From NCBI RefSeq assembly GCF_000189555.1, contig NC_017276.1: a DNA stretch of 64,000 bases. The stretch is one strand, 5' to 3'. The notes under the pieces are model-generated. The model saw only the letters and a program-made list of their open reading frames with translations. It searched no databases and was not told where the DNA came from. Position numbers and translations under genes: made by a program. Shown here in pieces: positions 1,043-27,438 of the stretch. This DNA comes from Saccharolobus islandicus REY15A. GTDB taxonomy: Archaea > Thermoproteota > Thermoprotei_A > Sulfolobales > Sulfolobaceae. Numbering within the stretch: position 1 is the stretch's first letter; every line of letters begins with the position of its first letter.

Positions 1043-1783
1043 ATGAGAGGAAAAGAACTCATAATTGCGCTTTCCATATCTCTCGGAATTGCAGTTGCTA
1101 TATTATCGTTGCCAGATATACTAGAGCCCATAGCACATAAAATATTATTAGTCTTAGGCATTTATTGGCCTTTAGCAATTTTTATAATAGGTATAGTTCA
1201 TGGACTTAAACCTGACGAACATACATGGCCAATTACCGTATCCTATGGAATAATGCAGAGGAATATGAAAGGTGCAATAGTTTCTACAAGCGTTTTCGCA
1301 GGGGCATTAACACTCGTCTGGGCTAGTTTGAGCGCATTGACTGGACAACTTCTCTCATTCTTTCAGAATTACAACTTAGACCCAATAGTAGATGTTATAG
1401 TAGGGCTGACAATGATAGGAGTTGCCTTAATTTTCATTATTAAAGGCAAGGATAAAGTTGTGGATAAAGATAATAATCCAGATTACAAATTAATCTGGAT
1501 TCACGGACTAGCTGCGGCCTTTGGAGGGGATTTTATAGTAATATTGTTATTAACCATTGCCCTAAGTACACTTATTAGTGTGAATGTCACCTTCTTAATT
1601 GGACTATTATTTGGAATAGGTTCATGGATAGCCCAATCCATAGTGGTTTTATTAATATACAAAGGTTTGGTCAAAGGAGTGAAAGCGAATTTCCAAATTC
1701 TAGCTAAGGCAGGGAGGCTATCACTACTATTTCTAGGAATTTTTATGATAGGGTTGGGAATTTTAAGCTCTCTAACCGGTTAA
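1043..1783 (+). CDS. Multi-pass membrane protein, NiCoT/UreH/RcnA-like metal transporter or DsbD-like permease
   Basis: About 6 TM helices with His motifs GIVHGLKPDEH and WIHGLAAAFGGD, resembling nickel/cobalt transporter superfamily motifs. Confidence 0.55.
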   Translation: MRGKELIIALSISLGIAVAILSLPDILEPIAHKILLVLGIYWPLAIFIIGIVHGLKPDEHTWPITVSYGIMQRNMKGAIVSTSVFAGALTLVWASLSALTGQLLSFFQNYNLDPIVDVIVGLTMIGVALIFIIKGKDKVVDKDNNPDYKLIWIHGLAAAFGGDFIVILLLTIALSTLISVNVTFLIGLLFGIGSWIAQSIVVLLIYKGLVKGVKANFQILAKAGRLSLLFLGIFMIGLGILSSLTG

Positions 1784-2442
1784 AAATCTTTTATACTCTT
1801 TTCGGTCAACTTCGCAATAGCCTTTCTTAAAACTTGCATTATGGCTGGTTTAGAAATACCCAACTCATTTGCTAACTCCTCTAGTCCTATTCTTTTAGGC
1901 GTTTCGAAGTATCCCTTATCAAAGGCTAGCTTCAGAATTGATAATTCCTTAGGCGTTAGCTCTTCCTTTACTGAAAGGAGTGGATTTGAAGATTCCTCAA
2001 TAATTTTAAACTCATAAGTAAGCTCTTTCACCTCTGGTATGATCTTAATGAAGTTTTCGGAGTCAGCAATTACGTTCCATCTTTCCATTCCTTCATATAT
2101 AGTTTCTGACATGCTAAAAATTCTACAATCCTTTAATAATCTTTCAGCTATTCTTCCTTTAAGACTCTCTATCGATGCGTATATTGCTCTGATATTAGAT
2201 TTGTTTTTGTACTCATCTATTATTCTGAAATCAATAGTTGTTTCATTTCTACTCAGCATTCTAATTATTTGCCTATAAGACTCCTTGTCCTTAGCGTAAA
2301 TTATACCCATAACGTTTTCAGTGAGTCCATCTAATGATGGAATTCTCCTTACAACCTTTACATATAATTCCTCTTCGTTAAATCTCTCAGTGTAACGACT
2401 CCAATCGTCGTGTGAGAGCACTATGGTGTAACTTTTTATCAT
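1780..2442 (-). CDS. HTH-10 (bacterio-opsin activator type) transcriptional regulator
   Basis: C-terminal LTPKELSILKLAFDKGYFETPKRIGLEELANELGISKPAIMQVLRKA is the HTH-10 signature. Confidence 0.85.
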   Translation of the reverse strand: MIKSYTIVLSHDDWSRYTERFNEEELYVKVVRRIPSLDGLTENVMGIIYAKDKESYRQIIRMLSRNETTIDFRIIDEYKNKSNIRAIYASIESLKGRIAERLLKDCRIFSMSETIYEGMERWNVIADSENFIKIIPEVKELTYEFKIIEESSNPLLSVKEELTPKELSILKLAFDKGYFETPKRIGLEELANELGISKPAIMQVLRKAIAKLTEKSIKDF

Positions 2443-2492: not shown

Positions 2493-4151
2493 CTATGAAA
2501 TTCTATCTTTCTCACGAATTATAATATATATTGCAATTGATACTAGTAATATGATAACATAGACGATAATATAATTCGTAAAGCTATCATTATCCCGAGG
2601 AATACTGAAATTTATCTCATGGAGTTTATCTCCCAGTGATAAGTACAATTTACCCTTATGATATAACACTATAGTATTATTATAAACTCCTACGACAAAA
2701 TATCCCCTAGGTATATAAATGGTGGAATTTGGCAAGCTTATAACTAATTCATAAGTACCGTTATTGTATTTCATTATTATGGGAGAACCTTGAATTAAAG
2801 GAAAGTTCTGATAGAAGAATATAGGATTATGGTAATACTGTACAGAGTTGTTCTCCACAACAAGACCAGTTGAAATCATTGTACCCGAGGGAAGGCTATT
2901 TAAACCTCTCTTACCAATTTGATAATATGATATAGTCGAATTGTAAAAAAGTATTAATAAGACAGATTTATTGTAAATATAAAAGTTCGATACGTTATGA
3001 ATATTTAGTCCATAAGTAGTATTAAATAGAACTAAGTATAGATAGGGATTGAAGTTGGCTAACAAATAATAATCTGAAATACGATTCGCAACCGATGGTA
3101 AAACGTTAACAGAATAATTGACTATGTTGATAATGGGCCCTACTTCAATAGACAGTGGGACAACAATTGGATTAACAAGGGTTAAGCTACTTGAAAGCAG
3201 TACTAAGGGAAAGAGCGGTGTATATATTGCATAAGGCTTCTCTAGTTGTTTGGTATAATTATTTATCTCTAAGCTTTCCATATAACTCCCATTAATAGAG
3301 TAAACCGAGATGTTACTTTCGTTGTAGAATACTAGAAATCGCAGACCCTCTAGGTTAGAAGGAATATATCCACTCATATACCCCCTAAATTTAATCTCTG
3401 TAGAACTTATTGACCCCGTATTTAAATTTACGGCTTCTATTTCATATTCCCCTATTGTGGAATTAGAATATATAGGATAAACTATGTAAATCCAGTTTTT
3501 ATATGTGAAAATGGGTAATACTTCATTTAGTGGAAAGAAAGACCCAGTTATAATATGATCTTTAATTAGTGTAAGATTTAAGGGATATCCGATAACATCG
3601 CTTATGCTAATATTCTTTTCATATTTATTAATAAAATTAGTTGCTGATATAGAAATATTATAAATGGGAATGTTTTCCTCTAAAAGTGAACCATTAGTGG
3701 TCATATTTCTACTTATTACTCCCACTAGCTTCTTGCTAATCAGAACTATATAGTCTCCAGTTAAGAGTGGATACTGAACAGAATAATTATAATTTAGCTT
3801 TATATTACTAATTAAGGTTAACGAGGAGTCTATAACATAGACTGTTAAACTTCCTTGTGCACGCATCTCAATTACTAGATATCCATCGTAAGTGTACGTT
3901 AGAACGTTGGACTCGTTAAGAGAAATGGTAGGCAAAGTTATTCTATTTCTATTAACATCTTCTAAAGTTATATTTAGAAAATCAGCTTTAGAAGTCTGGA
4001 TTACCATTATTGGCTTTCCTTCTAAGACAATTAAACTGATGAATATATTTTTCATACTGCTCGTCTTAACCAATATACCATTACAAAATTCTGATAAAAT
4101 CAATACTATTAATATGATCGTTAATACTCTTGACGCGCGCTTCTCACTCAT
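2493..4151 (-). CDS. Secreted/membrane-anchored hypothetical protein (beta-rich)
   Basis: 552-aa ORF with N-terminal hydrophobic signal, C-terminal TM helix plus basic tail, many sequons. Confidence 0.75.
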   Translation of the reverse strand: MSEKRASRVLTIILIVLILSEFCNGILVKTSSMKNIFISLIVLEGKPIMVIQTSKADFLNITLEDVNRNRITLPTISLNESNVLTYTYDGYLVIEMRAQGSLTVYVIDSSLTLISNIKLNYNYSVQYPLLTGDYIVLISKKLVGVISRNMTTNGSLLEENIPIYNISISATNFINKYEKNISISDVIGYPLNLTLIKDHIITGSFFPLNEVLPIFTYKNWIYIVYPIYSNSTIGEYEIEAVNLNTGSISSTEIKFRGYMSGYIPSNLEGLRFLVFYNESNISVYSINGSYMESLEINNYTKQLEKPYAIYTPLFPLVLLSSSLTLVNPIVVPLSIEVGPIINIVNYSVNVLPSVANRISDYYLLANFNPYLYLVLFNTTYGLNIHNVSNFYIYNKSVLLILFYNSTISYYQIGKRGLNSLPSGTMISTGLVVENNSVQYYHNPIFFYQNFPLIQGSPIIMKYNNGTYELVISLPNSTIYIPRGYFVVGVYNNTIVLYHKGKLYLSLGDKLHEINFSIPRDNDSFTNYIIVYVIILLVSIAIYIIIREKDRIS

Positions 4152-4213: not shown

Positions 4214-4385
4214 GGGGTTTGGGCTTCATTGAATTTTCATGAATTTGTATCCAATTCTCAGCCGTTGGGCTTCAACAGAGTCACGGGGCATTGCCCCGTT
4301 CATACCCCTCCGCCCCTTTAGCGGGATAACCCCAACCCACACCCGTGGAGTATCACGGATGTGGGGAAACCCGCACATCTTGAGG
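4214..4385 (-). ncRNA. Candidate omegaRNA (reRNA) scaffold overlapping the tnpB 3' end
   Basis: Stacked hairpins on the minus strand: GATGTG/CACATC, CCGTG/CACGG, ACGGGGC-AAT-GCCCCGT, AGCC/GGCT; position matches known TnpB right-end RNAs. Confidence 0.55.
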
Positions 4386-5521
4386 TAGATGTTGAGAGAT
4401 GCGTTCAACTGTCTATCCAAGGTGAACCCACACCTCACACACCTAAAAGTCCTGCCAACCTTTCGGGAAACCCATCCACATCTGGGGCAGGACTTGGAAG
4501 TGTGGTAAGGGTTAACCTCCTTCAAGAAGGAACCGTAAAGCGGTGCCCTGTACTTAAGCACACGGTGAATCGTCCTCCACACAGTCCTTGAAATCTTTTT
4601 AGAAAGGGAGTCGTTAGCGTCTTTGAACATCTCTTGCCTATTCAGTTTTTCAACAGCGAACATCGTGAGAGGATACATCTCCAGTAAACTGTTCACGAAC
4701 TTGTGAATATAATCCAGCACACGGTTCCTCTCTCTATGAGAATACTTCCTCAACAACTCCTTCCCCTTCCTACCATGCTTTGAAGCAAAACGTTGTATTC
4801 TACCCCTCTTTAGTTCCACACCGTATTTTAGACTATACAACTCCTTCAAGGAAAATGTAACGAACTTCTCTCCATCATAAGCATCTAGAGTATAAAGGTT
4901 ACTATCAATTGCTAGGAAATCTAGGGGAGTAAACCAAGGTAATCTGTAGCGGAACGGTAAATACACCTTATCCTCCTTAATTATGGGCTCACCTAACTCA
5001 AGCCCTTTAACCCGCTTAGAAAACCATTTGTGAGACCAAGAGAATGTGACGTATTCGTAAGGTCTTACAGTAATCCTAACACTCCCACCATTAACCTTTC
5101 TGAGCGTCGATTTTACTCTAACGTAAACCTTCTTTAGTCTAGGTTTCCTCAGTGATGCTTGCCCCTTCTCAGCCCTCCTCTTCCAACCCCTTAATATTGA
5201 GTAAGCGTCGTTTATTGCTTTGTCCACGTAGTGAGAAGCTAAAACGTTAATCTTCTCTAACTCGTCTCTCAACACCTTATTCACTTCCTTTTTCTTAGGT
5301 AACTTGACTTTGACCTTCGTGAGTACTTTTTTGCCCTTCTTCACTTCTTTTCTCTCTACCTTAGTCCTCTCCCACAGCCAGTCTAATGCTTTCTGTAGTA
5401 GGACTCTGTAGTTCTCCAGTAGTATTTTCGTCTCCTCCCTCTTGTTGTTCTTTATGGAGTAAGTTAGGTAAATGTACTCCTCCTCTGGTTTGAATGATTT
5501 AATTCTTAAGTTCTTCGACAC
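4226..5521 (-). CDS. tnpB: TnpB RNA-guided endonuclease
   Basis: RuvC-I AIDSN, RuvC-II FAVEKL, Zn finger CPRCG/CVRCG, RuvC-III DRQLNASLNI all present. Confidence 0.93.
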   Translation of the reverse strand: MSKNLRIKSFKPEEEYIYLTYSIKNNKREETKILLENYRVLLQKALDWLWERTKVERKEVKKGKKVLTKVKVKLPKKKEVNKVLRDELEKINVLASHYVDKAINDAYSILRGWKRRAEKGQASLRKPRLKKVYVRVKSTLRKVNGGSVRITVRPYEYVTFSWSHKWFSKRVKGLELGEPIIKEDKVYLPFRYRLPWFTPLDFLAIDSNLYTLDAYDGEKFVTFSLKELYSLKYGVELKRGRIQRFASKHGRKGKELLRKYSHRERNRVLDYIHKFVNSLLEMYPLTMFAVEKLNRQEMFKDANDSLSKKISRTVWRTIHRVLKYRAPLYGSFLKEVNPYHTSKSCPRCGWVSRKVGRTFRCVRCGFTLDRQLNASLNIYLKMCGFPHIRDTPRVWVGVIPLKGRRGMNGAMPRDSVEAQRLRIGYKFMKIQ

Positions 5522-6082
5522 ACTTCTTCACCTTTTCGTATTTGTGACTCCTCATTCCGTAGAGTTTTTCACTGAATGATACTAGGATTGAGATCAGATC
5601 CTCTATCAACTCTTGTTCTGGTGTTTTGTCCTCCCTATTAAGAACTACTATTTCGCAGTTGTGTGCTTTGCATACTTCTTCTATTATCTCGAAACCGAAT
5701 CTAACTAGTCTGTCTGGGTAAGCTATGACTACTTTTGACACCTCGTTGTTCAGTATCATTCTTAATAATTTGAGGAATCCCTTCCTCTTCATGTTTAACC
5801 CAGAACCTACGTCTGTTATTATTTGGTCGTAGTCCTTTACTTGTTCTTGCAGGTATTTTACTTGGTTTATTAAGTCGTCTTTTGTGTGTTTGATGGTACC
5901 CTAGCATAAAGTATCACTTTCCTCTTTCTTACAATCCCCATTAGCTTTTCCACATCCTCTTCTCTGAACCTCCACTTTCCAGTCTCTAGTATTACTGGTT
6001 TGATATAACCCTTCTTAACGTAGCTCTGTAAAGTGCGGTATGATATTCCTAAGCGTTGGCATACTTCCTTAGGTTTTAGAAT
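5499..6082 (-). pseudogene. tnpA: IS607 TnpA serine recombinase, inactivated
   Basis: Reconstructed (M)LKPKEVCQRLGISYRTL...ILYARVPSNTQ/KDDLINQ...; start is ATT (6080-6082), catalytic-motif Ser is Pro (CCA 5894-5896), 1-nt deletion in A-run at 5880-5883. Confidence 0.88.
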
Positions 6083-6373: not shown

Positions 6374-7087
6374 GTGATAAGGGCAATAAACGTAAGTAAA
6401 ATTTTTCACGGAAGTTTTGCAGTAGTTGAAGTTAATCTAGAAATTTATGAGAACGAGAAGGTAGGAGTTATAGGTGTTCATAACTCAGGGAAGACTGTAC
6501 TACTTCAGATGCTAGCTGGAGATGTGAAACCAACTAAAGGTAAAGTGTATTTAGAAGATAAGAGGAAGATCGCTTATATACCTCAAGTACCCAAATTTAT
6601 ACCCACTATCAGTGTTAAAGACGTAATGACTTATGTTAATAAGGAGTATCATTATTTAGATTTTGTTGGCTTAGATGGAAATAAGAAGGTTAAGGATCTA
6701 TCCTTAGATGAGAAAAAGAGGTTGTCCTTAGCTCTTTCATTACCTTTTTCCCCTAACCACCTCATAGTCGATGACATGTCCCAAATTTCTTCTCTAACTA
6801 AAGATTTGATAAGGAGATTTAAAGGAGGTGTGATAATTGCTCACCATAACCTTAAGGATATATGGGATTTAATAGATAGAGTTATAATTATGTCTAAGGG
6901 TAGGGTCGTTTTCGATGGTCCCAAGAGTGGATTGTTGTACAAGGTTATAAGATTTAAGAATAGTGAGATATGGGAAAGGGAAAACGAGAATAGTATCGAA
7001 AGTGATTTAGATAAACGTGGAGTTAAGTATGAGGTTATTAGAGTGACACCAGATGAGGTTTTCCTATATTTTTATGCAGGAATTTAA
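6374..7087 (+). CDS. ABC transporter ATP-binding protein (degenerate motifs)
   Basis: Walker A GVHNSGKT, signature region LSLDEKKRL, Walker B LIVDD, H-loop IAHH. Confidence 0.8.
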   Translation: MIRAINVSKIFHGSFAVVEVNLEIYENEKVGVIGVHNSGKTVLLQMLAGDVKPTKGKVYLEDKRKIAYIPQVPKFIPTISVKDVMTYVNKEYHYLDFVGLDGNKKVKDLSLDEKKRLSLALSLPFSPNHLIVDDMSQISSLTKDLIRRFKGGVIIAHHNLKDIWDLIDRVIIMSKGRVVFDGPKSGLLYKVIRFKNSEIWERENENSIESDLDKRGVKYEVIRVTPDEVFLYFYAGI

Positions 7088-8057
7088 AAGATCAATTGTA
7101 TTCGTCTTCTTAATTCTTATAGCTCTGAGTCTGTCACTAATAGCTGCGCAAATTCTTTCCGAATCGATAAGCGTTATAGGAATCGTTGAGGGCTCTTCTT
7201 ATGGGATAAAAGTATCAGGCTATGTCTTTGACTTTCAAGGAAAAGGTGTAAGTTCAGAAATAAAGTTGTCATACTACAATTTCACAGAGAGCGTTAAGAC
7301 AAATAATGGGTCATTTTACTTGTATCTTCCAGTGGCTTATATTCAGAATAATACTAGGATTAACGTAATAATAAATTCATTTCAAAAGAACGTAAATCTA
7401 ACATTAACTATACCAAACTCTTCAACTACTTTCGGTTTTTCAAGCCTCTTTTTAAAATATTATTCCAGCCAAAATCTTTCAATAATAAGCGTTAAGGGTA
7501 AAACTTTCATCGCAGTAGATCCTAAACAAGATAGTTCAAATTATACAATTTTTGAGATTAATTCAGATAATGTTAATCTTCCTCTAGATGTCAATTTCAC
7601 CTACAATAATTTTTCAAACACGCTAAAGATACCTCTCATTATCCTTTTATTATTTTTCTTTTCCTTTATCGAATTGATGGACTACTATTTATTATCCTCT
7701 TTTCCTAGAGGCGAATTAAGGCAAATTATGAGGTTAGTAGGAACAATTAAAGTATATGTCGGAAAGTTAATAGCTGAGATACCTTTGACAATTATGTTAT
7801 CCAGTCTGCCATTTTATTTGTTTGAATTCATTTTGATAGGTAATGACATCGCCTTGATTTTACCTTATATGATAGCTTCAATCTCTTTCTCTTTAGGTGT
7901 TTACGGTTTGGCGCCATTCGGAAGTAAGAACATGATATATTATTCTGTAATATTAGGATTTTATATCATAAATTTAGTAATATATGATAGATACTTATAT
8001 TCTCTCTTAGCAACTCTTCTCCTAATAGTTGGATATATAAAACTGAGAATTTCCTAG
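7053..8057 (+). CDS. ABC transporter permease-like membrane protein with extracellular domain
   Basis: Overlaps the ATPase; N-terminal TM, large loop, several C-terminal TM helices. Confidence 0.65.
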
Positions 8058-8590
8058 ACAAGTATTAAATACACAATGACAGCAATGTATATCACACTAC
8101 CTACTATTATCCATAATATCTTGTTATTTACAACGTTAAACTTTCGTAAAACCAAAGAGTCTATTGAGAAATTACCAGAACCATAGGCTATTATGTACGC
8201 GTTTATTATCATCATTAGAAGATTTAACCCATATTCCTCAGCTCCAGTCCAGCTAGCAGATAAGAAGTAAATTAGGTTAGTGTAAAATGCTACTACACCA
8301 CATAGTCTGCTCATTAGCCCTATAAGGATTAGAATCCCAAAGCAGATCTCTCCTATCATCACTAAGGTTCCAACTAGAACCGGATGTGGCATTGCGACTA
8401 TGTATAAAAATTGCCTTATAATAGATCCTTGGGCTAAATACTGTATTGTAAAACCTACATATTGTTCGGAAGATGGATTCAGAAATCCTGAATTGAGAAG
8501 TTTTCCTAAAATACCCGCATAGAGCCATATGGAAGCCATTGATATCCTTAAAATTAATGTAAAATTATCGGAGATCATTGTCTTTGCCAT
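8054..8590 (-). CDS. DoxD/DoxX-family membrane protein (similar to thiosulfate:quinone oxidoreductase small subunit)
   Basis: [17 protein letters not shown]...[16 protein letters not shown]...GSGNFSID pattern typical of DoxX/DoxD. Confidence 0.7.
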
Positions 8591-9486
8591 AACAATCCCT
8601 CTCTTAATTTCTTGCTAATTTGTATGAGAGAGTACAATGATAAAGAGAGAATTGCCACTCCAGCAACTACGGGAGAGGAGAGTAATATTAATTGGGAGAT
8701 AGTAGAGAGTAAGGGCATTCCCATATAGATTGTGTACTTCCACACTAGGTTTTTACTTATTAATGGGAACGAGGAGGAAGCGAGATACAATAGTGAATTT
8801 ATTGCAGTAGGGGTTAAGCAGCAAATTCCCGCTATTGTTCCAATTGATGGGACAGAGGCTGTCAAAAATCCTCCTGCAATGTTTGTTGCAGTTATCCTAA
8901 AGGTCTTTGGTACTTTCCATTCCATTAAATTGTATGACACATATATTAGTGATATGGTATAGTAGCTTAGCATGAACGCAAATGATAGTATTAACGTGTT
9001 TAATAGAGCAAAGATGATCATTGGTATGTTAAGAACGAAGAAATTAAAGTAGGTTTGAATTCCATATGCATCGTATGTTATAGTTGTTAGCTTTAAAAAA
9101 TAGGGGCTAATGTTGATGTTCGGGACCAAGATGACTCCGCTAACTATTAGGAAGGATACTAAATAGGAAACTGAATAGAAAATTAGTATTTTTCTAAACG
9201 CCTTATCGTTTAGAAGACTCTTCATAATATTTAATACGGTAAAGTCTCCTTTCACTAGTATGAATTTGTTCTCCTTATGTCTATAAAGGAAGTACCCAAA
9301 TATACTAGAACAAGCAAGATATATAACGGTGAATGTTAAGAAGGGAAGTATAAACGTTTGTTGTCCGGTATCAGATAAGGGAGAATACCACAAACTAACT
9401 ATCCTAATCCCATTTATTAAAATTGGGAGAAATACGGTAAAATTAAAAAACAAAAAAGTATAGAAATATGGATGTAGGACTTTCAT
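8575..9486 (-). CDS. Multi-pass membrane protein with a vicinal-cysteine CCxxP motif
   Basis: Hydrophobic ORF; likely start ATG 9486 (MKVLHP) after a GGGGA RBS; motif [11 protein letters not shown]. Confidence 0.7.
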
Positions 9487-9496
9487 CCTTATTCCC

Positions 9497-10717
9497 CTAA
9501 CAGTGAAGCCCAGTAACTGGAGGTAACAAAACGTTATCAACTAGGTAAGTTGCTACTTGGTTTTGAACTGGAATTATCACTGCTGGAGCGGTAGACAAAG
9601 GTACATAGCTACTTACCGTTAAACTACTTACGGATATTAGAGCTATTATACCACCTGATTGTACATTACCGTGAATCACTACATATGCGTACTGCCCTCC
9701 AGGCATAAGTTCTATATCTGCTAAGCCTTTAACACTAAATGTTGGCAAGTCTATAGTTTTGACTATCTGAAAAGTGGATGTGGATATCACAAACACTTGA
9801 TTCGCATTTGAAGGTGCCTCAAGGTAGTAATCTCCATTTGGAGTGAATACACCCCTCTGTGGTATTGTACCGTTGGGCATTTGTAAGATGCCTAGCAATT
9901 TCAATGATGGTAGAGAGTAAAACCCAACTGAGTTATTTCCAACGTACTCTACCGCTACCATTGTGCCTTGCATATTAGGGCTTACCATATAGGGTTGTGA
10001 ACCAGCAGCAGTAGGTAAAACCTTAATTAAGCTACCGTTTAACGCTATAAGATCAACGCTGTTGTTAAATCTCATTGGAACTATTAAATAGTTTCCATCT
10101 GGACTCCATCTAACGTCACAAGGATAATACGTTCTACCATTAACTGGAGAGACGAAATGCTGTTCCCATAATACGTTAAGAGATGAAACGTTGATTAGAG
10201 CTAAGATACCGCTTGGACCATCTGCTACTGCGACTAGTTGTTGACTTGGTGAGTATGCAACTCCTATAAATCCTATACTATTTCCAAAATTGAATTCCTT
10301 TACGATCTTTAAACTATTAGCATCGATTGCGTAAACTGTACCATTATTTACTGGTATGAGGTAATATCGTGATTGTGCAGCATTTTCAAATGGATACTCA
10401 ACCCACCAGTATACTTGTTGTGGTACGTTTGTAGAGATGTTAATGGAATGCGTATATCCTTGGAAAGGAGTAGTGGATGATGGGTTTATTATTTCTGCAA
10501 TTCCTTTCTGTGTGAATACTAGGAAACTGTATTGAGGAGAATTAGTAGTAGAAACTGAACTACTGGTAGTTTGGGTCGAACTAGGTATTGATGACGATTG
10601 AGACTGCTTTAACATAATGTATGCAGCCCCTACTCCTATCAATATAATTATTATGAGTCCTACTATTAACCATAATTGATAACTGGACAACGCCTTTATT
10701 AACTGCTTTTTATTCAT
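9497..10717 (-). CDS. Membrane-anchored extracellular YVTN/YncE-like beta-propeller protein
   Basis: N-terminal TM, S/T linker, repeated blades (VAYSPSQQ, VRWSPDG, VSPNM, VFTPNG; VFVIST..IVKTI); ends GLHC. Confidence 0.8.
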   Translation of the reverse strand: MNKKQLIKALSSYQLWLIVGLIIIILIGVGAAYIMLKQSQSSSIPSSTQTTSSSVSTTNSPQYSFLVFTQKGIAEIINPSSTTPFQGYTHSINISTNVPQQVYWWVEYPFENAAQSRYYLIPVNNGTVYAIDANSLKIVKEFNFGNSIGFIGVAYSPSQQLVAVADGPSGILALINVSSLNVLWEQHFVSPVNGRTYYPCDVRWSPDGNYLIVPMRFNNSVDLIALNGSLIKVLPTAAGSQPYMVSPNMQGTMVAVEYVGNNSVGFYSLPSLKLLGILQMPNGTIPQRGVFTPNGDYYLEAPSNANQVFVISTSTFQIVKTIDLPTFSVKGLADIELMPGGQYAYVVIHGNVQSGGIIALISVSSLTVSSYVPLSTAPAVIIPVQNQVATYLVDNVLLPPVTGLHC

Positions 10718-10719
10718 TC

Positions 10720-10845
10720 GATTCCCTCAAAATATTACGTATTTTTAGGTAATTATAAAAGTTGTGATATTATAAACCCTTATTAAAGTTAATATAATTA
10801 AATTGTAATAATCATATCTACAGTATCTAATACTTTTGCATAAAA
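10720..10845 (-). repeat. Left copy of a perfect 126-bp inverted repeat (dsrE 3' end + promoter + RBS)
   Basis: Manual comparison: exact reverse complement of 12678-12803. Confidence 0.95.
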
Positions 10846-11016
10846 TTAAGAAAACCCTTGAACCAAAATAAATTAGGTGACTAAGAAAATTCTTCATCAA
10901 CATTTTTCTTATTGTTATATCATAAGAATAGACTTTTTATTCTTAAAATTAAATTCAGTTATGCACTAAATGGCTGAAGATAAGTTTTTTAAATAGAATT
11001 AACATCATTTTAAACA

Positions 11017-11991
11017 ATGATAGAGGAAACTACACTGATTTACGCTGAAGATTTCAAGTCATTGTTAGACCTCGAAAACTCGTATAAGTTATATAAATTA
11101 TCAAATATAAAAAAGCTAGATTTTGGGTATATTTGTTACCTCACCATATTCAGACTAAAAGTAGAATGTATATGCAAGCCGAAAAAGGATGGCCTTGATA
11201 TAATAGAAAAGAATGGAAGATTCATAATAAATATAACGTTCCAGAAGGAAAGCGAAGAGAGAATAAACGTAAAAATAAGTTACAGAGGAATTCTTGAAAA
11301 ACTCCTAAGTAGTATAGCAAATTCAATAAGGAAAAATTTAGAAGAATATTCAAAATATTTGGTAAGAAAGCAAAAAGTTGAAAATAATCTTAGAATTTCT
11401 ACTCTTAAGCCAGATAAAGTAGTAGATCTTAGAGGAGAAGAGTGCCCAGTTCCTGAAATAACGTTAAAGAGAGAATTGATGAAGGCTAATAGGGGAGAAA
11501 TAATAGAAGCTTTAACTGATAATCCAGCTGCAGTAGCTCACACTATCCCAGAAATAATTAAGTTATTTAACTGTAGATATGAGGTCCTAAAATATGAAGA
11601 TTACGTATCTTTTAGGATTTTAGTTTTAAGTAATACGATTAACACTGATGAATACGTTAAGGTAATTAAGGAATTCAACGAGGCTAGGATTAGAGAACTA
11701 ATTAGGGATAAGAAATTCATGTCGTTTTTATACACATATTTCGTGAAATTCCATAAAGCTGAAAAAGTTAATGATTTTAAGAATTATAGATTTAATTGTG
11801 AAAAAGACATTTGCCTAGTTTCATCAGCACCTTTAGGTAGGGGATGGCTATTTACTGGACTGATTAAGAGTAACAAAATGGTATGTGCTAGGATTGACAC
11901 TGAAAATGAAACCTTATTAGATTACCAAGCATTAGAATATTTAAAGAAGTTAGCTGGAGAAACAAATGTCATGTATTTATCGTTAGATTGA
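11017..11991 (+). CDS. Multidomain protein with a central TusA/SirA sulfurtransferase domain
   Basis: Central [13 protein letters not shown]...EALTDNP TusA motif, flanked by ~120-aa N-terminal and ~115-aa C-terminal domains. Confidence 0.8.
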   Translation: MIEETTLIYAEDFKSLLDLENSYKLYKLSNIKKLDFGYICYLTIFRLKVECICKPKKDGLDIIEKNGRFIINITFQKESEERINVKISYRGILEKLLSSIANSIRKNLEEYSKYLVRKQKVENNLRISTLKPDKVVDLRGEECPVPEITLKRELMKANRGEIIEALTDNPAAVAHTIPEIIKLFNCRYEVLKYEDYVSFRILVLSNTINTDEYVKVIKEFNEARIRELIRDKKFMSFLYTYFVKFHKAEKVNDFKNYRFNCEKDICLVSSAPLGRGWLFTGLIKSNKMVCARIDTENETLLDYQALEYLKKLAGETNVMYLSLD

Positions 11992-11995
11992 CTAT

Positions 11996-12397
11996 TTGCA
12001 AAAATTTATTTGGACTAAGCGTGTATTTCCCATTATGGAGCTTAAGGATGAATGTGGTTGCATAGTTAATAGGAAATACGCTTCAGACTTTCTAATGAAA
12101 AGGTTATTTAGCTATAAGAAGAAGATAAATGCCAAAAAATTGGGCTATTTTAGAATAGATAATTCTAGGTGGTTCACACTCTATAGGGCTCAAGATGGGA
12201 AAATATATTATGAAAGTTCTGAATGTCCACTACTCATAATAACCTTAGAAGCACTCTGTGAGAGATATATTGAAAATGAGGGAAAAATAAATAGAGATAA
12301 CTCCATGGAAAAACTACGTCAAATCAAGGGATTTACAACTAACCAGATAGTGAATGAAGTTGTTGAGAAATTTATAAATGGTGTCAGCAATGGTTAA
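11996..12397 (+). CDS. Hypothetical Cys-containing protein
   Basis: 133-aa ORF (TTG start) coupled to both neighbours; ECGC, SECP and LCE cysteines. Confidence 0.65.
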   Translation: MQKFIWTKRVFPIMELKDECGCIVNRKYASDFLMKRLFSYKKKINAKKLGYFRIDNSRWFTLYRAQDGKIYYESSECPLLIITLEALCERYIENEGKINRDNSMEKLRQIKGFTTNQIVNEVVEKFINGVSNG

Positions 12398-12725
12398 GAA
12401 AATTGCCTATATAGTTGAATCCAATTTGGGTTCTTATATTTTAGGGCAGATGGTAGTACCGCAGTTGGAGGAAAACAGACACAACGCTGAAGTTATTGGA
12501 ATGTTCTTTATACACGATAATGTCTATATTCTAATGAAAGATAATCCCTTAGCCGAAAGATTAGGTAAACTTAGTAGGGAAAGGGGCATATATTTGCAAG
12601 CCTGTGATCAATGCGTATACATGAGAAATTTAGCTGATAAACTAATAGAGGAAGCAAAGATAGGCTGTTTCCCTGACTTTTATGCAAAAGTATTAGATAC
12701 TGTAGATATGATTATTACAATTTAA
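12390..12725 (+). CDS. DsrE/DsrF (TusD)-like sulfur relay protein
   Basis: VIGMFFIHDNVY and LQACDQC motifs; likely start ATG 12390 after a GGTG RBS. Confidence 0.8.
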   Translation: MVKKIAYIVESNLGSYILGQMVVPQLEENRHNAEVIGMFFIHDNVYILMKDNPLAERLGKLSRERGIYLQACDQCVYMRNLADKLIEEAKIGCFPDFYAKVLDTVDMIITI

Positions 12726-12803
12726 TTATATTAACTTTAATAAGGGTTTATAATATCACAACTTTTATAATTACCTAAAAATACGTAATATTTTGAGGGA
12801 ATC
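12678..12803 (+). repeat. Right copy of the 126-bp inverted repeat
   Basis: Last 16 codons of dsrE, then TATA-like TTTATAAT/TTTTATAA and RBS GAGGGA before the tusA GTG. Confidence 0.95.
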
Positions 12804-12806
12804 AAA

Positions 12807-13055
12807 GTGGAAGATCTAACTTTAAGACAACCAGATGAGGTTCTTGATGTTAGAGGAGAGGAATGTCCTGTTCCAGAAATGAGCGCGAGCAAAAAATTGA
12901 AGAAAATGAAAGTAGGACAAATGTTAGAAGTGTTAACAGATCACGAACCCGCAGTACATGTTACTTTACCTTCTTTATGTAAATCCTTAGGATACCCATT
13001 TGTAGTGATAAGAGATAACGGACTTTACAAGGTGAGAATCCTAAAGGTGAAATAA
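12807..13055 (+). CDS. tusA: TusA/YeeD-family sulfur carrier
   Basis: [20 protein letters not shown]; 82 aa. Confidence 0.92.
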
Positions 13056-13058
13056 TCA

Positions 13059-14288
13059 ATGCCAAGTATGGTACTACAGCCAGTACTTCAAGAGAGTTGG
13101 GCATTAATCTACGGATTATTCGCTCTTTCTGGATTTATTTTGGGTTGGGCAGCCCAAAGAGGTAATTATTGTTTTGTAAACGCAATGACTTCAATATTTA
13201 CGGCCAAAAGTTATGAGCGATTTGGAGCCCTTTTAATACTATTCGGTTTGTCCGCGTTAGGAAGCGGATTATTAGTTGCATTTGGAGTTATTCCAGCATT
13301 TGATCAGTATTATTATAACTATTTTGCAGGTTGGTATATCCTTGTTGGCTCTATAATATTTGGCTTTGGTGCAGCATTAGCAGGTGGTTGTAATCTATCA
13401 ATGCTTTATAGGGCTGCTAGTGGGTATGTTCAAAATTGGATAGAGCTATTCGGAATGATGATAGGCACATATGTATTTGCAATAGGTATATGGCCCTTCC
13501 AGCTATACACAATGGCTAATGGGATTTTATCAACTACGAACGGAGGATATGTTGAATACTTGCCCTACATTATATTTCACTCAATTTCAAATATGTCAGT
13601 CTATATAACCACGTTAGTAGTTAGCCTACCACTAATATTCATTGGAATATACTTGCAACAGTACACTAAGAGAAAATGGGCAATCTCATCTAGTCTACGC
13701 ATCAATTTACCTGCAGCTAGAGCGTATTATAATCAAAACATAAGTACATCTGGAGAAGAAAATGTATCGTTAACCAAGGAAATTAAAGATTTGATACTAT
13801 TAAGAAAACCATATGGAACTAACTTAACTACAATAATATTGGCATTAGATTTACTTTTAGTTTTCATAGTTGGTGCTGGATACACCTTCAATTACCTAGT
13901 CATAACTTCGTCTGATGGCGGTAGATTCTTTGAATACTTGCTAATGTTAGGAAACGTCAAGTTATTTCTAAACACACCTTGGTTTAACGATTCGCTACCA
14001 ATTGTCGACCCAAGTACGCTAATGGTAATAATGTTGTGTATTGGAGCTTTCTCAGCATCATATCTAAGTGGTGACTTCAAAATACGAATACCAAGAAATA
14101 AGAGTAGACTGCTGATAGGGTTCGGAGGAGGAATGTTAGTTGGTATAGGCGTTAGAATGGCCCTTGGATGCAATGTAGGATTAATGTGGACTAATTTTGC
14201 CCAATTAGGTTATGACGGTATTATATTCCTCTTCGGAATGTTATTAGGAGTTTATTTAGCGATTAAAGTCCAAGAGAGGTGGCTATAA
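13059..14288 (+). CDS. yeeE: YeeE/YedE-family thiosulfate (sulfur compound) transporter
   Basis: Three conserved Cys motifs: QRGNYCF, ALAGGC, MALGCNVG; directly downstream of tusA. Confidence 0.88.
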   Translation: MPSMVLQPVLQESWALIYGLFALSGFILGWAAQRGNYCFVNAMTSIFTAKSYERFGALLILFGLSALGSGLLVAFGVIPAFDQYYYNYFAGWYILVGSIIFGFGAALAGGCNLSMLYRAASGYVQNWIELFGMMIGTYVFAIGIWPFQLYTMANGILSTTNGGYVEYLPYIIFHSISNMSVYITTLVVSLPLIFIGIYLQQYTKRKWAISSSLRINLPAARAYYNQNISTSGEENVSLTKEIKDLILLRKPYGTNLTTIILALDLLLVFIVGAGYTFNYLVITSSDGGRFFEYLLMLGNVKLFLNTPWFNDSLPIVDPSTLMVIMLCIGAFSASYLSGDFKIRIPRNKSRLLIGFGGGMLVGIGVRMALGCNVGLMWTNFAQLGYDGIIFLFGMLLGVYLAIKVQERWL

Positions 14289-14566
14289 TGATTTCCTTAC
14301 CAATTATTAGAAGATTATTAGCACCCTTAGTAGTAAGTTTATTTGCATTAGGTTGGTATGGATTCTCAGTACAATACATAGTTTCCAACAATAATGTGGC
14401 ATTAGAAAACGGCGTATTTTCAGCTTACATATCCCCATCACAATTGCAAGGATATATAGAGGCAACCAGATATATTTGTTATGTAGTAGTTTATTTGGGA
14501 CTCATATTCTTCTGGTATAATCTAGTTAAGACGGTTAGAGAATTGGAGGAGGCGAATAAACAATGA
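14279..14566 (+). CDS. Small two-TM membrane protein
   Basis: 95 aa, two hydrophobic segments, overlapping operon junctions. Confidence 0.65.
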   Translation: MAIMISLPIIRRLLAPLVVSLFALGWYGFSVQYIVSNNNVALENGVFSAYISPSQLQGYIEATRYICYVVVYLGLIFFWYNLVKTVRELEEANKQ

Positions 14567-14925
14567 GTGATTTATATGCAATAATGGTAATATCTGGAGA
14601 AGATGAAAAACTCTATATGGCCTATATAACTGCCATAGGCTACGCCTCTTCTGGAAATAAAGTGTACATGTTCTTCACCATGGATGGGTTAAGGGGAGTA
14701 ACAAAGGAAATAGAGAAAATACAGCTACCTAACGTAAAGCCATTATCCTATTACTATGAAAATCTAATAGAATTAGGAGGTGATGATATAGAACTTACAG
14801 CATGTGAATTTGGAATGAAAGTTAAGAACGTTAATCATGAAAGGCTATTGGATAAGGTTAAGATAAGCGGTGTTTCGGAATTCGCATTAAAGAGTTCCGA
14901 GGCTAAAGCCACATTAATCTTTTAA
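14563..14925 (+). CDS. DsrE/DsrF/DrsH-like (peroxiredoxin-family) protein
   Basis: VYMFFTMDGL and LTACEFGM motifs. Confidence 0.82.
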   Translation: MSDLYAIMVISGEDEKLYMAYITAIGYASSGNKVYMFFTMDGLRGVTKEIEKIQLPNVKPLSYYYENLIELGGDDIELTACEFGMKVKNVNHERLLDKVKISGVSEFALKSSEAKATLIF

Positions 14926-14958
14926 AAATTTTTTAGTGTCAATAACGTATTTCGTAAT

Positions 14959-15834
14959 ATGAGCGTGATTGATGCTATCAATTTAACAAAGAGGTATGGC
15001 GATATTGAGGTACTCCATGGCCTTACATTCCCCATAGAGGAAAAGAGTATAACCTTAGTAATGGGTCCTAATGGTGCGGGGAAATCAACACTGCTTAAAA
15101 TAATTGGCGGGCTAATAAATAGAACATCAGGCTATATAAGTGTTTTAGGAGAGGATCCTTGGAATAGCAACAAAATACCAAGAAAAGTTGGGATAATATT
15201 GGATAGGCCATTTTTACCACCATACCTTACTGTAATTGACATAGTGAAGGAAGTCTCCAGTGAATTTAGCTATCCTCTCAGCGACGCTAAAAGGTTATTA
15301 GAAGACTTTAATCTAGTACATTTTATGAAAAATAAAGTTAGAGAACTTTCAGCTGGTACTAAGCAGAAATTACAAATAGTCTTTTCCTTGATAAAAAATC
15401 CTGAAATAATTATAGCAGATGAACCTACAGCTAATCTGGACATAACATCACGATACGAGGTCTACAACACTTTTGCAGTGTTAAGAGAAAAAATGGGCTT
15501 AACTGTACTCATATCATCCCATATACCAGCTGAAATTTTAGCGTTCTCAACTCACGTCCTGGCAATAAACAATGGAATTATGAAGTTCTTCGGCAAAGTA
15601 GATAAGCTATTAAGAAATAATTTTCTCGAAGAGTTTTACATAGTGGTTGATAATATAGGTAAGGCTCTAGAAGCGTTAAAGGATAGGAGGATAGAAGTCA
15701 TAGGTAACCAGATAAGGATTTCTGGAAACTTAGCTGAAATTTCTAAAATCTTATCCAATGCTGGGGTAAGGATATTTTACGTTAGAAATTCTATAATAGA
15801 TAAAAGTATCAAAGGGGAGACGGGGTGGGAGTAG
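14959..15834 (+). CDS. ABC-2 type transporter ATP-binding protein
   Basis: GPNGAGKST, LSAGTKQKL, IIADEPT. Confidence 0.92.
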   Translation: MSVIDAINLTKRYGDIEVLHGLTFPIEEKSITLVMGPNGAGKSTLLKIIGGLINRTSGYISVLGEDPWNSNKIPRKVGIILDRPFLPPYLTVIDIVKEVSSEFSYPLSDAKRLLEDFNLVHFMKNKVRELSAGTKQKLQIVFSLIKNPEIIIADEPTANLDITSRYEVYNTFAVLREKMGLTVLISSHIPAEILAFSTHVLAINNGIMKFFGKVDKLLRNNFLEEFYIVVDNIGKALEALKDRRIEVIGNQIRISGNLAEISKILSNAGVRIFYVRNSIIDKSIKGETGWE

Positions 15835-16442
15835 TTAGCTTTCTAATCAAGCATCGATATGGTGAATATGGATTACTCTCGTACATTGACTTAGAGTTGG
15901 CCTTAAGTGTTAGTATAGTGGCATCATTTAATTTCTTTCATCCCCAGACTAGAAATGCAAGCGTTGATCAGCTCCTATTCAATATAATTACATTTACAAT
16001 AGGTATAATATTATCTACACTAGTTATAAGGAATATATGTCTAGGGATGGGGCAAGATCTATATGACGGAACAATAATATCGTTTTTACAAATGAGAAAT
16101 AGGAGGGCAATATTTCTTCTATCATATTTCATTGATGTTTTGCTAATAGGTGGACTATTTCTCTTGATTGCAGAATTAGTATTTCTTCTATCATCATTTA
16201 CTCCACCCATAACATGGATAAGCATTTTCATATCCGAATACTTACTCCTCTGTAACTCCTCCTATTTGATTGCAATATTGATTAAAAGACCCTTTAGAAG
16301 CTTCTTCATAAGTATAAGCTTAATCTTCCTCGTTCTTGGAATAGAAATAACTGGAAATATGATTATATTTAATTATCTTTTGCCACTAGATCTAATTTTG
16401 GGTTACCTAGCATACTATGCCTTTAGGAAGGTGCAGATATGA
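15825..16442 (+). CDS. ABC-2 type permease
   Basis: Multi-TM ORF overlapping the ATPase. Confidence 0.72.
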   Translation: MGVVSFLIKHRYGEYGLLSYIDLELALSVSIVASFNFFHPQTRNASVDQLLFNIITFTIGIILSTLVIRNICLGMGQDLYDGTIISFLQMRNRRAIFLLSYFIDVLLIGGLFLLIAELVFLLSSFTPPITWISIFISEYLLLCNSSYLIAILIKRPFRSFFISISLIFLVLGIEITGNMIIFNYLLPLDLILGYLAYYAFRKVQI

Positions 16443-16825
16443 TGAGAGTAGGCATATATTTAATCTCTTTAGGTATTTTCATACTAGTACTAGGAGAGAT
16501 AACGTTTCCTTTAAACACTACATTAAACGTCAACAATAGCAGTATGTATATAATCCCTCCATGGTATGAAAAGGCAAAAGTAAGTGTGAATAGTGGAAGT
16601 TTTCTCATAGTTTATCATAACTATACGTACATATTATTAGTAAAAGGGAGTATCACTATTAAACCAGCCTCAATACTATATGGAGTTGGCAACGCCAGTA
16701 TACTATTAGAAGGGTATAAGATTTTTTACAATCAATCATATATTGCAATTGGAATTTTCCTCATAATAGTAGGAGTTGGGCTAGAGATCATTAGATTTAA
16801 GAGAAGAAAAGATCACCAATTTTAG
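16439..16825 (+). CDS. Small membrane protein (TM-loop-TM)
   Basis: 128 aa, terminal TM helices, ATGA overlap with the previous gene. Confidence 0.65.
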   Translation: MMRVGIYLISLGIFILVLGEITFPLNTTLNVNNSSMYIIPPWYEKAKVSVNSGSFLIVYHNYTYILLVKGSITIKPASILYGVGNASILLEGYKIFYNQSYIAIGIFLIIVGVGLEIIRFKRRKDHQF

Positions 16826-17487
16826 ACCAGATTATCTACATAATTCCTAATTAACTTCCCCATTGCCCTCCTTAACGCTTGTAGGGTGGCTGCTTTACTT
16901 ATTCCTAATTCCTCTGATAATTCCTTCAAATCCACCTTTTTAGGCCAATCGAAATATCCCATCTTATACGCCTTATATATGATTTCAAACTCCTTACTTG
17001 TGAGCAAATTCTTCACAGACACTAAATTTCCATCATCTTTCTCGATGATCTTTAAACTGTAAGTATATTCTTTCAAGGTGGGTAATATTATTTCTCTGAA
17101 TATTTTATCATCTATTACTAAGGACCATTTTTCTAACCCGTTTGAAATTCGTTCGGAGATGTAGTATGCCCCCTTATTCATTAAGAGTTCGCTAATTCCT
17201 CCCCTTAACTTAGCTGACAACAATATTAAAGCTCTTAACTCGTTCTTTGTTCTAACATTTTCAATAATTTTTACTCTAGTCACCCTATTATTAGACTTAA
17301 TTATATTAATTAATTCATTAAGTATTAAAGGATCTCGGACATAAACCTCAGCTATTATATTCTCCTCCATCTTTTCAAACGATGGTGTACGAATTTTCAT
17401 CAGCACTCTTAGATCTTCTTCATCATACTTATCAGTTAGTAAAGTCCAGTCTTCATGCGATAATACTACGTTATAACTTCTTATCAC
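16822..17487 (-). CDS. HTH-10 (bacterio-opsin activator type) transcriptional regulator, paralog of 1780-2442
   Basis: LTSKEFEIIYKAYKMGYFDWPKKVDLKELSEELGISKAATLQALRRA; N-terminus aligns with the 1780-2442 protein. Confidence 0.87.
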   Translation of the reverse strand: MIRSYNVVLSHEDWTLLTDKYDEEDLRVLMKIRTPSFEKMEENIIAEVYVRDPLILNELINIIKSNNRVTRVKIIENVRTKNELRALILLSAKLRGGISELLMNKGAYYISERISNGLEKWSLVIDDKIFREIILPTLKEYTYSLKIIEKDDGNLVSVKNLLTSKEFEIIYKAYKMGYFDWPKKVDLKELSEELGISKAATLQALRRAMGKLIRNYVDNLV

Positions 17488-26322: not shown

Positions 26323-27438
26323 CTATTTTATAATTTGTGTTTTACTAGTAATCAAATTACTCCCATTCAGATCGAATATTTTTACTTTATTTGGTTTAGC
26401 TAGTAGATGAGTTTCAATTCCAGTCTCTAATGGTTCTTCTGCATCAACTATTATATCTATATTTTCGTCAGTAATTGGAGATACAACTATCTTAAATATA
26501 CCAGCACCATAACTTACCAACTTTACTTTTACAATACCCATGTCTATATACTTATCTAGTAAAGTATCAGAAAGAGTTAGGTCATCTGGTCTTAACCCTA
26601 TAACTATATTGCTTTGTCCTTTTAATTCCATATTATTTAGGGGTACTTTTAAGTTAGCTATTATCGCATTATTTTCTATTATCTTTGCTTGTATCAAGTT
26701 TATTTCACCAGTTAGCCTAGCTATTAGATCTGTCGCAGGATATTCATATATTTCAGTTGGAGTACCTATTTGGGCGAATTTTCCATTAACAATAACTCCA
26801 GCTTTATTTGCTATAGCAAATATGTCTGCTGGGTCATGGGATACAATTAGTGTAGTTAGCTTTCTCTCTCTTTGTATCTTCCTTACTAAAGCCCTTGCGC
26901 TTTCCCTAATCTGCGCATCCAGATTACTGAAGGGCTCGTCTAACAGAAGAACCTTAGGATCTTTTACTAACGCTCTAGCTATTGCTGTTCTTTGCATTTG
27001 ACCTCCAGACAGTTCTTTAGGGTATCTGTTTAAAACACCGGATAAACCTAATTCTTCAGAAACTTCCTTAACCTTGTTTTCTATCTTATCTTTAGGTACC
27101 TTGGCCAGTTTTAATGGAAAGGCTATATTATCGAAAACAGTCATATTGGGATATAAGGCCCAATTCTGAAAGACCATTGCAATGCCTCTTTTCTCCGGAC
27201 TCATCACAACTCTACGTGGTGATGATACTGCCTCATTATCGAAATATATATAACCACTAGTAGGTTCTTCTAATCCTGCTATCAACCTTAGAAATGTAGT
27301 CTTTCCGTGACCGCTTGGTCCTAAAACACCAAAAGCCATTCCCGAGTCTATTGTTATTGACACATTATCCACTGCCTTTACTTCTGTTTTACCTTTTTTG
27401 AATATTTTAGATAGATTTTCTACTCTAATTGTGGTCAT
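26323..27438 (-). CDS. araV: Arabinose ABC transporter ATP-binding protein AraV
   Basis: Recognised sequence MTTIRVENLSKIFKKGKTEVKAVD; GPSGHGKTT, LSGGQMQR. Confidence 0.93.
   Translation of the reverse strand: MTTIRVENLSKIFKKGKTEVKAVDNVSITIDSGMAFGVLGPSGHGKTTFLRLIAGLEEPTSGYIYFDNEAVSSPRRVVMSPEKRGIAMVFQNWALYPNMTVFDNIAFPLKLAKVPKDKIENKVKEVSEELGLSGVLNRYPKELSGGQMQRTAIARALVKDPKVLLLDEPFSNLDAQIRESARALVRKIQRERKLTTLIVSHDPADIFAIANKAGVIVNGKFAQIGTPTEIYEYPATDLIARLTGEINLIQAKIIENNAIIANLKVPLNNMELKGQSNIVIGLRPDDLTLSDTLLDKYIDMGIVKVKLVSYGAGIFKIVVSPITDENIDIIVDAEEPLETGIETHLLAKPNKVKIFDLNGSNLITSKTQIIK

Follow-up and report, generated by a model that had tools for sequence, protein, structure and literature searches.

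A three-gene sulfur-relay cassette between inverted repeats with a predicted promoter occurs in both orientations among Saccharolobus genomes

In a 64,000-nucleotide stretch of Saccharolobus islandicus REY15A (contig NC_017276.1; the whole 64 kb is referred to as "the window"), a cassette of three genes encoding a TusA-fusion protein, a small Cys-containing protein and a DsrE-like protein is enclosed by two copies of a 126-bp inverted repeat. The cassette separates an operon that begins with tusA and yeeE from one that begins with a beta-propeller gene. Comparison with related loci retrieved from public assemblies (designated by L-numbers) revealed that the cassette exists in two orientations relative to its flanks, A and B, with all genes intact in both. 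The explanation that we consider probable is slow, recurrent and essentially neutral flipping by homologous recombination between the promoter-bearing repeats.

Direct strand comparison established that positions 10720-10845 are the exact reverse complement of positions 12678-12803 (126 of 126 bases), and beyond either edge the matching of bases is at the random level. An automated repeat search widens the pair to 134 nt with 98% identity. We refer to the repeat unit as S, to its left copy, on the propeller side, as the P arm and to its right copy, on the tusA side, as the T arm. Two copies of S are present in the window. The only other repeat of at least 40 nt in the window is a weak inverted pair (61 nt, 74%; 26972-27032 and 41006-41066) with arms 14 kb apart. 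The T arm begins on a codon boundary, 300 nt into the open reading frame (ORF) for the DsrE-like protein. It takes in the final 15 codons of that ORF (FYAKVLDTVDMIITI) and its stop, 48 nt in total, followed by a 78-nt AT-rich spacer that terminates in GAGGGAATC. The GTG start codon of tusA (12807) lies 3 nt beyond the T arm, and the ATG of the propeller gene (10717, minus strand) lies 2 nt beyond the P arm. The P arm sequence is identical in 20 related loci. The same two arms recur in more than 20 independent assemblies, and the repeat is thus not an assembly artefact. These assemblies come from different technologies, that of S. solfataricus P2 being an early Sanger-era genome.

Related loci were found by looking up the exact 115-aa DsrE-like protein in public assemblies, followed by further look-ups, and 23 loci were placed. 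Orientation A, that of the window, has the order propeller (minus strand), cassette (plus) and tusA-yeeE (plus), and orientation B has tusA-yeeE (minus), cassette (plus) and propeller (plus). The tally is 12 A and 11 B. The A loci are those of the window, S. islandicus LAL14/1, Y.N.15.51 and L.D.8.5, four M.16-series drafts (GCA_000245195/215/115/095), CP046616, S. solfataricus P2 and SULA, and a shibatae-like metagenome-assembled genome (MAG). The B loci are from S. islandicus M.14.25, M.16.27 and L.S.2.15, one M.16-series draft (GCA_000245255), Sulfolobus sp. E11-6, S. solfataricus P1 and five metagenome contigs. Loci recovered through the 115-aa look-up have identical 126-bp arms around a cassette of 1,832 bp (1,831 bp in P2). 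In five B loci (L003, L004, L005, L007 and L009) the outer flanks are exchanged exactly at the arm edges and nothing else is altered. The 115-aa protein is identical and intact in the A and B loci from the exact-match look-up, and all ORFs are intact in both states. A sequence-only reading of this DNA had predicted that 10846-12677 would be inverted through recombination of the two arms, with the dsrE-like gene rebuilt intact either way, which is what the breakpoints and the protein in the B genomes show. It had also proposed a comparison of orientation across genomes, and the one reported here excludes a single fixed orientation.

The orientation calls cover finished genomes and two metagenome contigs named "k141_", a prefix that indicates MEGAHIT contigs built with k = 141, exceeding the repeat length. 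With such sources, the calls cannot be put down to guesses by an assembler. All resolved metagenome contigs are B. Two others (L019 and L020) merely end in the repeat and are uninformative on mixed orientations, because a de Bruijn assembler produces such ends even for a clonal genome. The order of GenBank accessions points, by inference only, to orientation A in M.16.4 and three S. shibatae strains and to B in Y.G.57.14 and E5-1-F. By that criterion, P2 and three other AKA-accession genomes of S. solfataricus also seem to share orientation A.

The locus varies among S. solfataricus strains in other ways. Those of P2 and SULA are 99.7-99.9% identical to the locus of S. islandicus Yellowstone strains, and the P1 allele is ~10% diverged and clusters with that of Sulfolobus sp. 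E11-6 (the equivalent of 8800-14700; L008, L032 and L044). It seems, from these alignments, that one S. solfataricus lineage replaced the whole locus by horizontal transfer or recombination. In P1, an insertion sequence (IS) with a DDE_Tnp_1 transposase of 321 aa lies within the cassette, between the TusA-fusion gene and the gene for the small Cys protein (L044:3383-4348). The P1 fusion gene is extended to 336 aa, and the P1 cassette is 3,279 bp.

The two arms evolve in concert. E11-6 and P1 diverge from the window by 9-12%, in flanks and cassette alike. Within each of these genomes the arms differ from one another at three sites in the outer 8 nt, with one additional interior site in E11-6 only. 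One dinucleotide reads AT in both arms of the window, CT in both arms of E11-6 and GG in both arms of P1. Three more substitutions in E11-6/P1 are mirrored in both arms, and two of these change residues encoded by the dsrE tail and have been carried over to the non-coding pseudo-tail as well. In L016 (92% protein identity) the arm ends are exact complements of each other, with two shared changes. In the shibatae-like MAG the flanks are 2.5-4% diverged and the arms are identical to those of the window. Independent evolution of the arms is impossible as the source of this pattern. As both arms share lineage-specific substitutions in lineages 9-12% diverged, the alignments show ongoing gene conversion between the arms and rule out a recent origin. 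The sequence-only reading had described an exact 126-bp inverted repeat with sharp edges, which recomputation bore out, and had attributed its identity to a recent origin or to ongoing gene conversion; the second attribution stands and the first does not.

Haplotypes were compared over about 5.6-7.7 kb around the locus, using a neighbor-joining (NJ) tree of the locus and Fitch parsimony for orientation. They form three groups (Kamchatka; Yellowstone/Lassen/solfataricus; Iceland). In the first two, the A and B orientations intermingle within haplotype clusters that differ by 4-9 single nucleotide polymorphisms (SNPs) in ~5.6 kb. With Lassen counted apart from Yellowstone/solfataricus, three clusters hold both orientations. 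For example, M.16.27 (B) is 4 SNPs from one A draft, and M.14.25 (B) is 5 SNPs from another A draft and 7-8 SNPs from M.16.27. Similarly, Y.N.15.51 (A) is 4-5 SNPs from the B metagenome contigs, and the locus tree pairs L.D.8.5 (A) with L.S.2.15 (B) as sister taxa. The NJ tree requires at least six changes of orientation. Because gene flow could inflate this count, we consider only at least three of the approximately six flips to be robust.

Orientation was discordant in none of the 11 locus pairs separated by three or fewer SNPs and in 132 of the 242 pairs separated by four or more. As no near-identical pair differs in orientation, flipping is slow, and the rate looks low enough for an evolutionary rather than a phase-variation timescale. 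Nothing in the near-identical haplotypes points to a fast or regulated switch. At the substitution rate of 4.66e-9 per site per year (PMC3718332), four SNPs in 5.6 kb would correspond, as a rough inference, to ~1e4-1e5 years.

The origin of the arrangement was sought in outgroup loci in which the TusA-fusion protein is 59-63% identical (L011/L012, L013 and L015). In all of them the cassette is codirectional with the propeller, membrane protein and DoxD genes and divergent from tusA-yeeE, a B-like order. No inverted repeat was found flanking the cassette in L011, L013 or L015. Each of these three has exactly one homologue of S, 79-81% identical, at the junction between the dsrE-like and propeller genes. 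The outgroup tusA promoters are conserved among themselves and unrelated to S. Because the outgroups have a single S homologue at that junction and an unrelated tusA promoter, the tusA-side copy is the derived one, and tusA-yeeE captured the regulatory region of the propeller operon. The spacer core AAGGGTTTATAAtATCACAACTTTTATAA, with two TATA-like boxes, is near-invariant in these ~60%-identity outgroups and, in the same alignment, is conserved above the adjacent coding sequence. We take it to be a predicted functional promoter or operator element. It is plausible that one such element serves two operons, which fits a strongly conserved spacer that originally served the propeller operon only and was copied ahead of tusA.

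The first part of the cassette (region I in Table 1) retains traces of the earlier arrangement. The outgroup tusA leader has a weak counterpart in its middle part (8 of 2000 shuffles for L016 vs. L011, uncorrected for multiple tests), and its right end carries a conserved TATA (TTTTTTAAATAG) ~30 nt upstream of the ATG of the fusion gene. Two candidate routes to the present arrangement were rejected. Pre-existing promoter similarity that seeded ectopic conversion finds no footing in the outgroups, as their tusA and propeller promoters resemble each other at the level of shuffled sequences except in the Shine-Dalgarno region. For a double staggered-break inversion, the first ~30 nt of region I were compared with the 5′ end of tusA, and nothing rose above shuffles. 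The repeat is absent from TusA-fusion relatives in species-representative genomes (32-37% identity; Acidianus copahuensis, Aramenus and others).

Inverted similarity near the outgroup cassettes is limited to 47-50 nt at 77-82% identity that tusA shares with the fusion gene in its TusA domain (L011:7777-7826/8400-8449; L013:3031-3077/4123-4169). This is coding paralogy around the CPxP active site. L013 and L014 hold a second small tusA gene. In L014 (Sulfolobus sp. D5, 41% identity) the TusA-fusion gene stands alone, with neither a Cys protein gene nor a dsrE-like gene; it has a divergent propeller-DoxD operon on one side and a convergent tusA-tusA-yeeE-dsrE operon on the other. This arrangement implies that the three-gene cassette is itself a later assembly.

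We propose the following history. S, consisting of the 3′ end of the dsrE-like gene and a conserved promoter/leader, would have been present once, between the dsrE-like gene and the propeller-DoxD operon. It would have been duplicated in inverted orientation in the ancestor shared by S. solfataricus, S. islandicus, S. shibatae and E11-6, the new copy landing directly ahead of the tusA start codon and displacing the leader of tusA. RadA-type homologous recombination between the arms, without a dedicated invertase, would then occasionally flip the three-gene cassette, and the same recombination would homogenize the arms through gene conversion. Because each arm carries a gene tail, a promoter and a ribosome-binding site, the genes and the operon promoters would survive each flip, with the same S element at both operons in either state. 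Both states would coexist in natural populations, and flips would recur on an evolutionary timescale. As both operons keep a repeat-borne promoter in both states, the sole regulatory difference to be expected is which operon lies downstream of the cassette to receive read-through. Sulfolobales recombine efficiently across short homologies. A general homologous recombination machinery is suggested here by the long arms, their homogenization over nearly the full length, breakpoints that can lie anywhere in identical sequence, slow recurrent toggling and the lack of a recombinase. We likewise infer that S has promoter activity, that read-through has an effect and that the two states are nearly neutral.

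Several points weigh against this explanation. S. islandicus chromosomes of types A and B could exchange SNPs of the flanks through frequent homologous gene flow, which would inflate the flips counted by parsimony. The locus pairs separated by three or fewer SNPs are few and non-independent. Orientation calls were made on consensus assemblies, in which a minority orientation within a culture could be hidden. Some of the M.16 genomes are drafts, and an assembler could in principle mis-orient a cassette between 126-bp repeats, although the conclusion is independent of them. Finally, the approximately 50:50 split of orientations, seen across three haplotype groups, is also compatible with a functional difference held under balancing selection.

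The last point leads to the strongest alternative, which we regard as unlikely but worth weighing: a selected, reversible expression switch (bet-hedging), also operated by homologous recombination, that would re-partner the constitutively promoted cassette with either YeeE/TusA import or the propeller/DoxD membrane operon and so give distinct sulfur-handling phenotypes. Both states do occur within each of three haplotype groups, at about 50:50 overall, but symmetric neutral toggling would likewise drift to such a ratio. The repeat spans exactly a gene tail, a promoter and a ribosome-binding site, so that neither state harms a gene, and conversion has held the arms perfect over at least 9-12% sequence divergence. 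Read directly, the sequence downstream of the dsrE stop codon lacks any stretch of five or more T, which makes read-through into the downstream operon plausible. However, the same S promoter stands before both operons in both states, and the difference between them is limited to that read-through. Moreover, near-identical haplotypes are never discordant in orientation, and P2 and the three S. solfataricus genomes with AKA accessions appear, from accession order, to share one. In its fullest form, with equally low probability, this alternative would amount to invertase-free archaeal phase variation, in which a conversion-maintained repeat toggles co-transcription of a sulfur-relay cassette and both states are selected in each hot-spring population for fluctuating sulfur/selenium chemistry. 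If orientation does affect expression, recombination-driven phase variation would be extended to Crenarchaeota.

A second alternative is a single ancient inversion, maintained as a trans-population polymorphism, with the interleaving of A and B produced by later exchange of SNPs through gene flow or conversion. S. islandicus recombines frequently, and the haplotypes of the Kamchatka cluster are visibly mosaic. Against it, the SNPs of the cassette itself are population-specific and common to A and B of one population. L001 (A) and L004 (B) are alike at all but 1 of the 1,832 cassette sites, and each differs from the Yellowstone/solfataricus cluster at 14-16 sites. Such sharing across orientations argues against one ancient inversion, which would need repeated conversion across the inverted segment in several isolated populations and is less parsimonious than renewed flipping across a perfect 126-bp repeat. 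We therefore consider a single inversion very improbable.

We give slightly less credence still to a classical inverton, in which a tyrosine or serine recombinase encoded elsewhere would drive fast, programmed inversion at a core site within the repeat. The architecture of flanking inverted repeats is inverton-like and both orientations exist, and a long-read study reports putative archaeal invertons (PMC10028968). However, Pfam tables covering 10 kb of each flank in ten loci revealed neither an integrase nor a resolvase, a scope that leaves room for a distant one in the genome, and only IS110-type transposase fragments in some strains. An orientation-dependent change of promoter or coding sequence within the invertible core is not seen either; the promoter-like element is in the arms, before both operons in both states. 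Classical inverton status thus fails on two features, the associated recombinase and the orientation-dependent change in the core. In addition, the arms have 4-10 times the length of typical recombinase sites, their homogenization along nearly the full length is a homologous-recombination signature, and orientation is stably inherited among near-identical haplotypes. By contrast, the features of recurrent inversions are present: long identical inverted duplicates with the breakpoints inside, recurrence on different haplotypes (a count that gene flow can inflate) and concerted evolution of the arms.

The window does contain a piece of a serine recombinase gene, in an IS607-type element (Table 1). 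Its TnpA ORF encodes a 97-aa fragment that covers positions 48-141 of the 145-position Resolvase N-terminal profile and lacks the N-terminal part, where the catalytic serine of serine recombinases is expected. The adjacent TnpB (431 aa) is intact and has an OrfB_IS605/Cas12f-like TNB domain. The element is absent from the corresponding site in L001-L010. The earlier statements that no dedicated invertase is adjacent and that the IS607 tnpA is dead were thus upheld by the ten-locus survey and by the truncated, strain-specific TnpA. We rejected the IS607 TnpA and the IS110 fragments as invertases, as they are truncated or found in some strains only, and both orientations exist in strains without them. 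A mobile element such as a composite transposon or a miniature inverted-repeat transposable element (MITE) was rejected as well. The window has two copies only, searches of plasmid and phage collections with the cassette and the repeat gave no match, and one arm is homologous to a resident intergenic region of the outgroups. An exact-match metagenome scan with the repeat core recovered this locus only.

Finally, misassembly of the repeat as the source of the second arm or the alternative orientation is effectively refuted: some short-read assemblies do break at the arms (L016, L019, L020 and L040), but such breaks are expected of de Bruijn assemblers at a 126-bp inverted repeat even in a clonal genome, and both arms and both orientations are found in finished genomes and in "k141_" contigs with a k-mer longer than the repeat.

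Table 1. Coordinates of the repeat arms, the cassette and neighboring features in the window
Feature	Position	Strand	Description
P arm (left)	10720..10845	-	Non-coding duplicate of the dsrE-like gene tail (last 15 codons + stop), then 78-nt promoter/leader
T arm (right)	12678..12803	+	Functional last 15 codons + stop of the dsrE-like gene, then 78-nt promoter/leader
Invertible cassette	10846..12677	+	1,832 bp; in both orientations relative to flanks in public genomes
Region I	10846..11016	.	Remnant of ancestral tusA/fusion-gene divergent intergenic region
TusA-fusion protein	11017..11991	+	324 aa; central TusA domain, residues 134-201 (Pfam)
Small Cys-containing protein	11996..12397	+	133 aa from TTG, or 120 aa from ATG at 12035 as in calls for other genomes
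DsrE-like protein	12378..12725	+	115 aa; CxxC motif; last 48 nt inside T arm
27-nt repeat core GGGTTTATAATATCACAACTTTTATAA	12744..12770	+	Two TATA-like boxes; second copy 10753-10779, minus strand
T operon	12807..16825	+	tusA 12807-13055; yeeE/Sulf_transp 13059-14288; 95-aa ORF; DsrE-family gene 14563-14925; ABC ATPase 14959-15834; two small membrane-protein ORFs
P operon	8054..10717	-	YncE-like membrane-anchored beta-propeller 9497-10717; 321-aa polytopic membrane protein 8575-9540; DoxD-family protein 8054-8590
IS607-type element	4226..5907	-	In the strain of the window only; intact TnpB 4226-5521, truncated TnpA 5499-5792; not part of the system

Matches at the locus in Pfam and NCBIfam are TusA in the 324-aa protein, a further TusA, Sulf_transp (YeeE), DsrE and DoxD, with a weak match for the beta-propeller. 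No family match was found for the small Cys protein in Pfam or NCBIfam. The product of the cassette dsrE gene scores 131 bits for the SaoD/DsrE family of NCBIfam, under the equivalog cut-off, and on this profile match it is better described as a SaoD/DsrE-family protein with a CxxC motif. Its ORF overlaps that of the preceding small Cys protein by 20 nt (12378-12397), and the gene is annotated with two alternative starts among genomes, giving 115 or 111 aa. In the P operon, annotations of the polytopic membrane protein encoded between propeller and DoxD give 321, 303 or 272 aa depending on the strain (window and L001-L010). The 272-aa call leaves a gap of ~100 nt behind the propeller gene, there are small indels in this flank, and the gene may carry start-site or frameshift variation.

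Two regulators of the HTH_10 family bracket the region (1780-2442, minus strand, 220 aa; 16822-17487, minus strand, 221 aa). Each adjoins an ABC-transporter module (6374-8057 and 14959-16825), and the neighborhood thus looks roughly two-fold symmetric about the cassette. The two proteins are candidate regulators of the 27-nt core. A 552-aa secreted or anchored protein without a family match (2493-4151, minus strand) is split into 264 and 277 aa in one metagenome contig and has 535 aa in others (equivalents in L003 and L005).

In Archaea, small inversions of the chromosome by which functional states alternate have hardly been documented. At this locus, a short inverted duplication of a gene tail and promoter has created a segment that can be flipped harmlessly, with repeated flips in the wild and a repeat kept perfect over ~10% divergence by gene conversion. 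The locus offers a ready assay for inverted-repeat recombination and conversion in the genetically tractable Saccharolobus, and the promoter capture by tusA-yeeE illustrates how an operon gains the regulatory region of another. There is also a practical warning, as gene order here varies among otherwise near-identical genomes and short-read assemblers break or guess. No earlier description of the locus was found in the LAL14/1 comparative-genomics paper or in other literature on Sulfolobus inversions, inverted repeats and TusA/DsrE/YeeE/DoxD, where only inversions of 0.2-0.5 Mb and IS/MITE elements appear; a comparative paper on ten S. islandicus genomes mentions inversions of 0.2-0.5 Mb only. 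A long-read survey reported only 12 putative archaeal invertons (six crenarchaeal datasets) and termed archaeal invertons "minimally investigated" (PMC10028968).

With bacterial invertons (fimS/FimBE, hin/hix and Bacteroides capsule promoters; PMC10028968, PMC9881135, PMC5903667) the system shares inverted repeats, an invertible segment next to operon starts and the existence of both orientations. It differs in having no associated recombinase gene, a much longer and homogenized repeat, a promoter in the repeat rather than in the core and a 1.8-kb cassette of three genes; mixed orientations within a population are not in evidence here, as judged from consensus assemblies. In plastid genomes and haloarchaeal plasmids such as pNRC100, recombination between inverted repeats likewise gives two isomers and gene conversion keeps the repeats identical, but those repeats are many kilobases long, interconversion within cells is rapid and whole single-copy regions are involved, in contrast to the short cassette at an operon junction described here. 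In its proposed mechanism the cassette resembles the sap (S-layer) locus of Campylobacter fetus. There, a small segment inverts RecA-dependently between inverted homologies at the 5′ ends of flanking genes, without an invertase, and its orientation decides which of these genes a promoter-bearing segment is coupled to. Unlike the cassette, however, the sap segment has one promoter inside it, produces on/off antigenic variation and inverts at measurable rates, whereas here each arm has a promoter copy and flipping looks slow. Inversions between human inverted segmental duplications, and Drosophila inversions with inverted duplications, resemble the present case in their near-identical long duplicates, breakpoints inside these, recurrence, concerted evolution of the arms and lack of a dedicated enzyme. 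They span kilobases to megabases, as opposed to 126-bp arms around a 1.8-kb segment in a crenarchaeal host. What further distinguishes the Saccharolobus locus from them is that its arms consist of a gene tail and a promoter, and that both states are fully functional operon arrangements.

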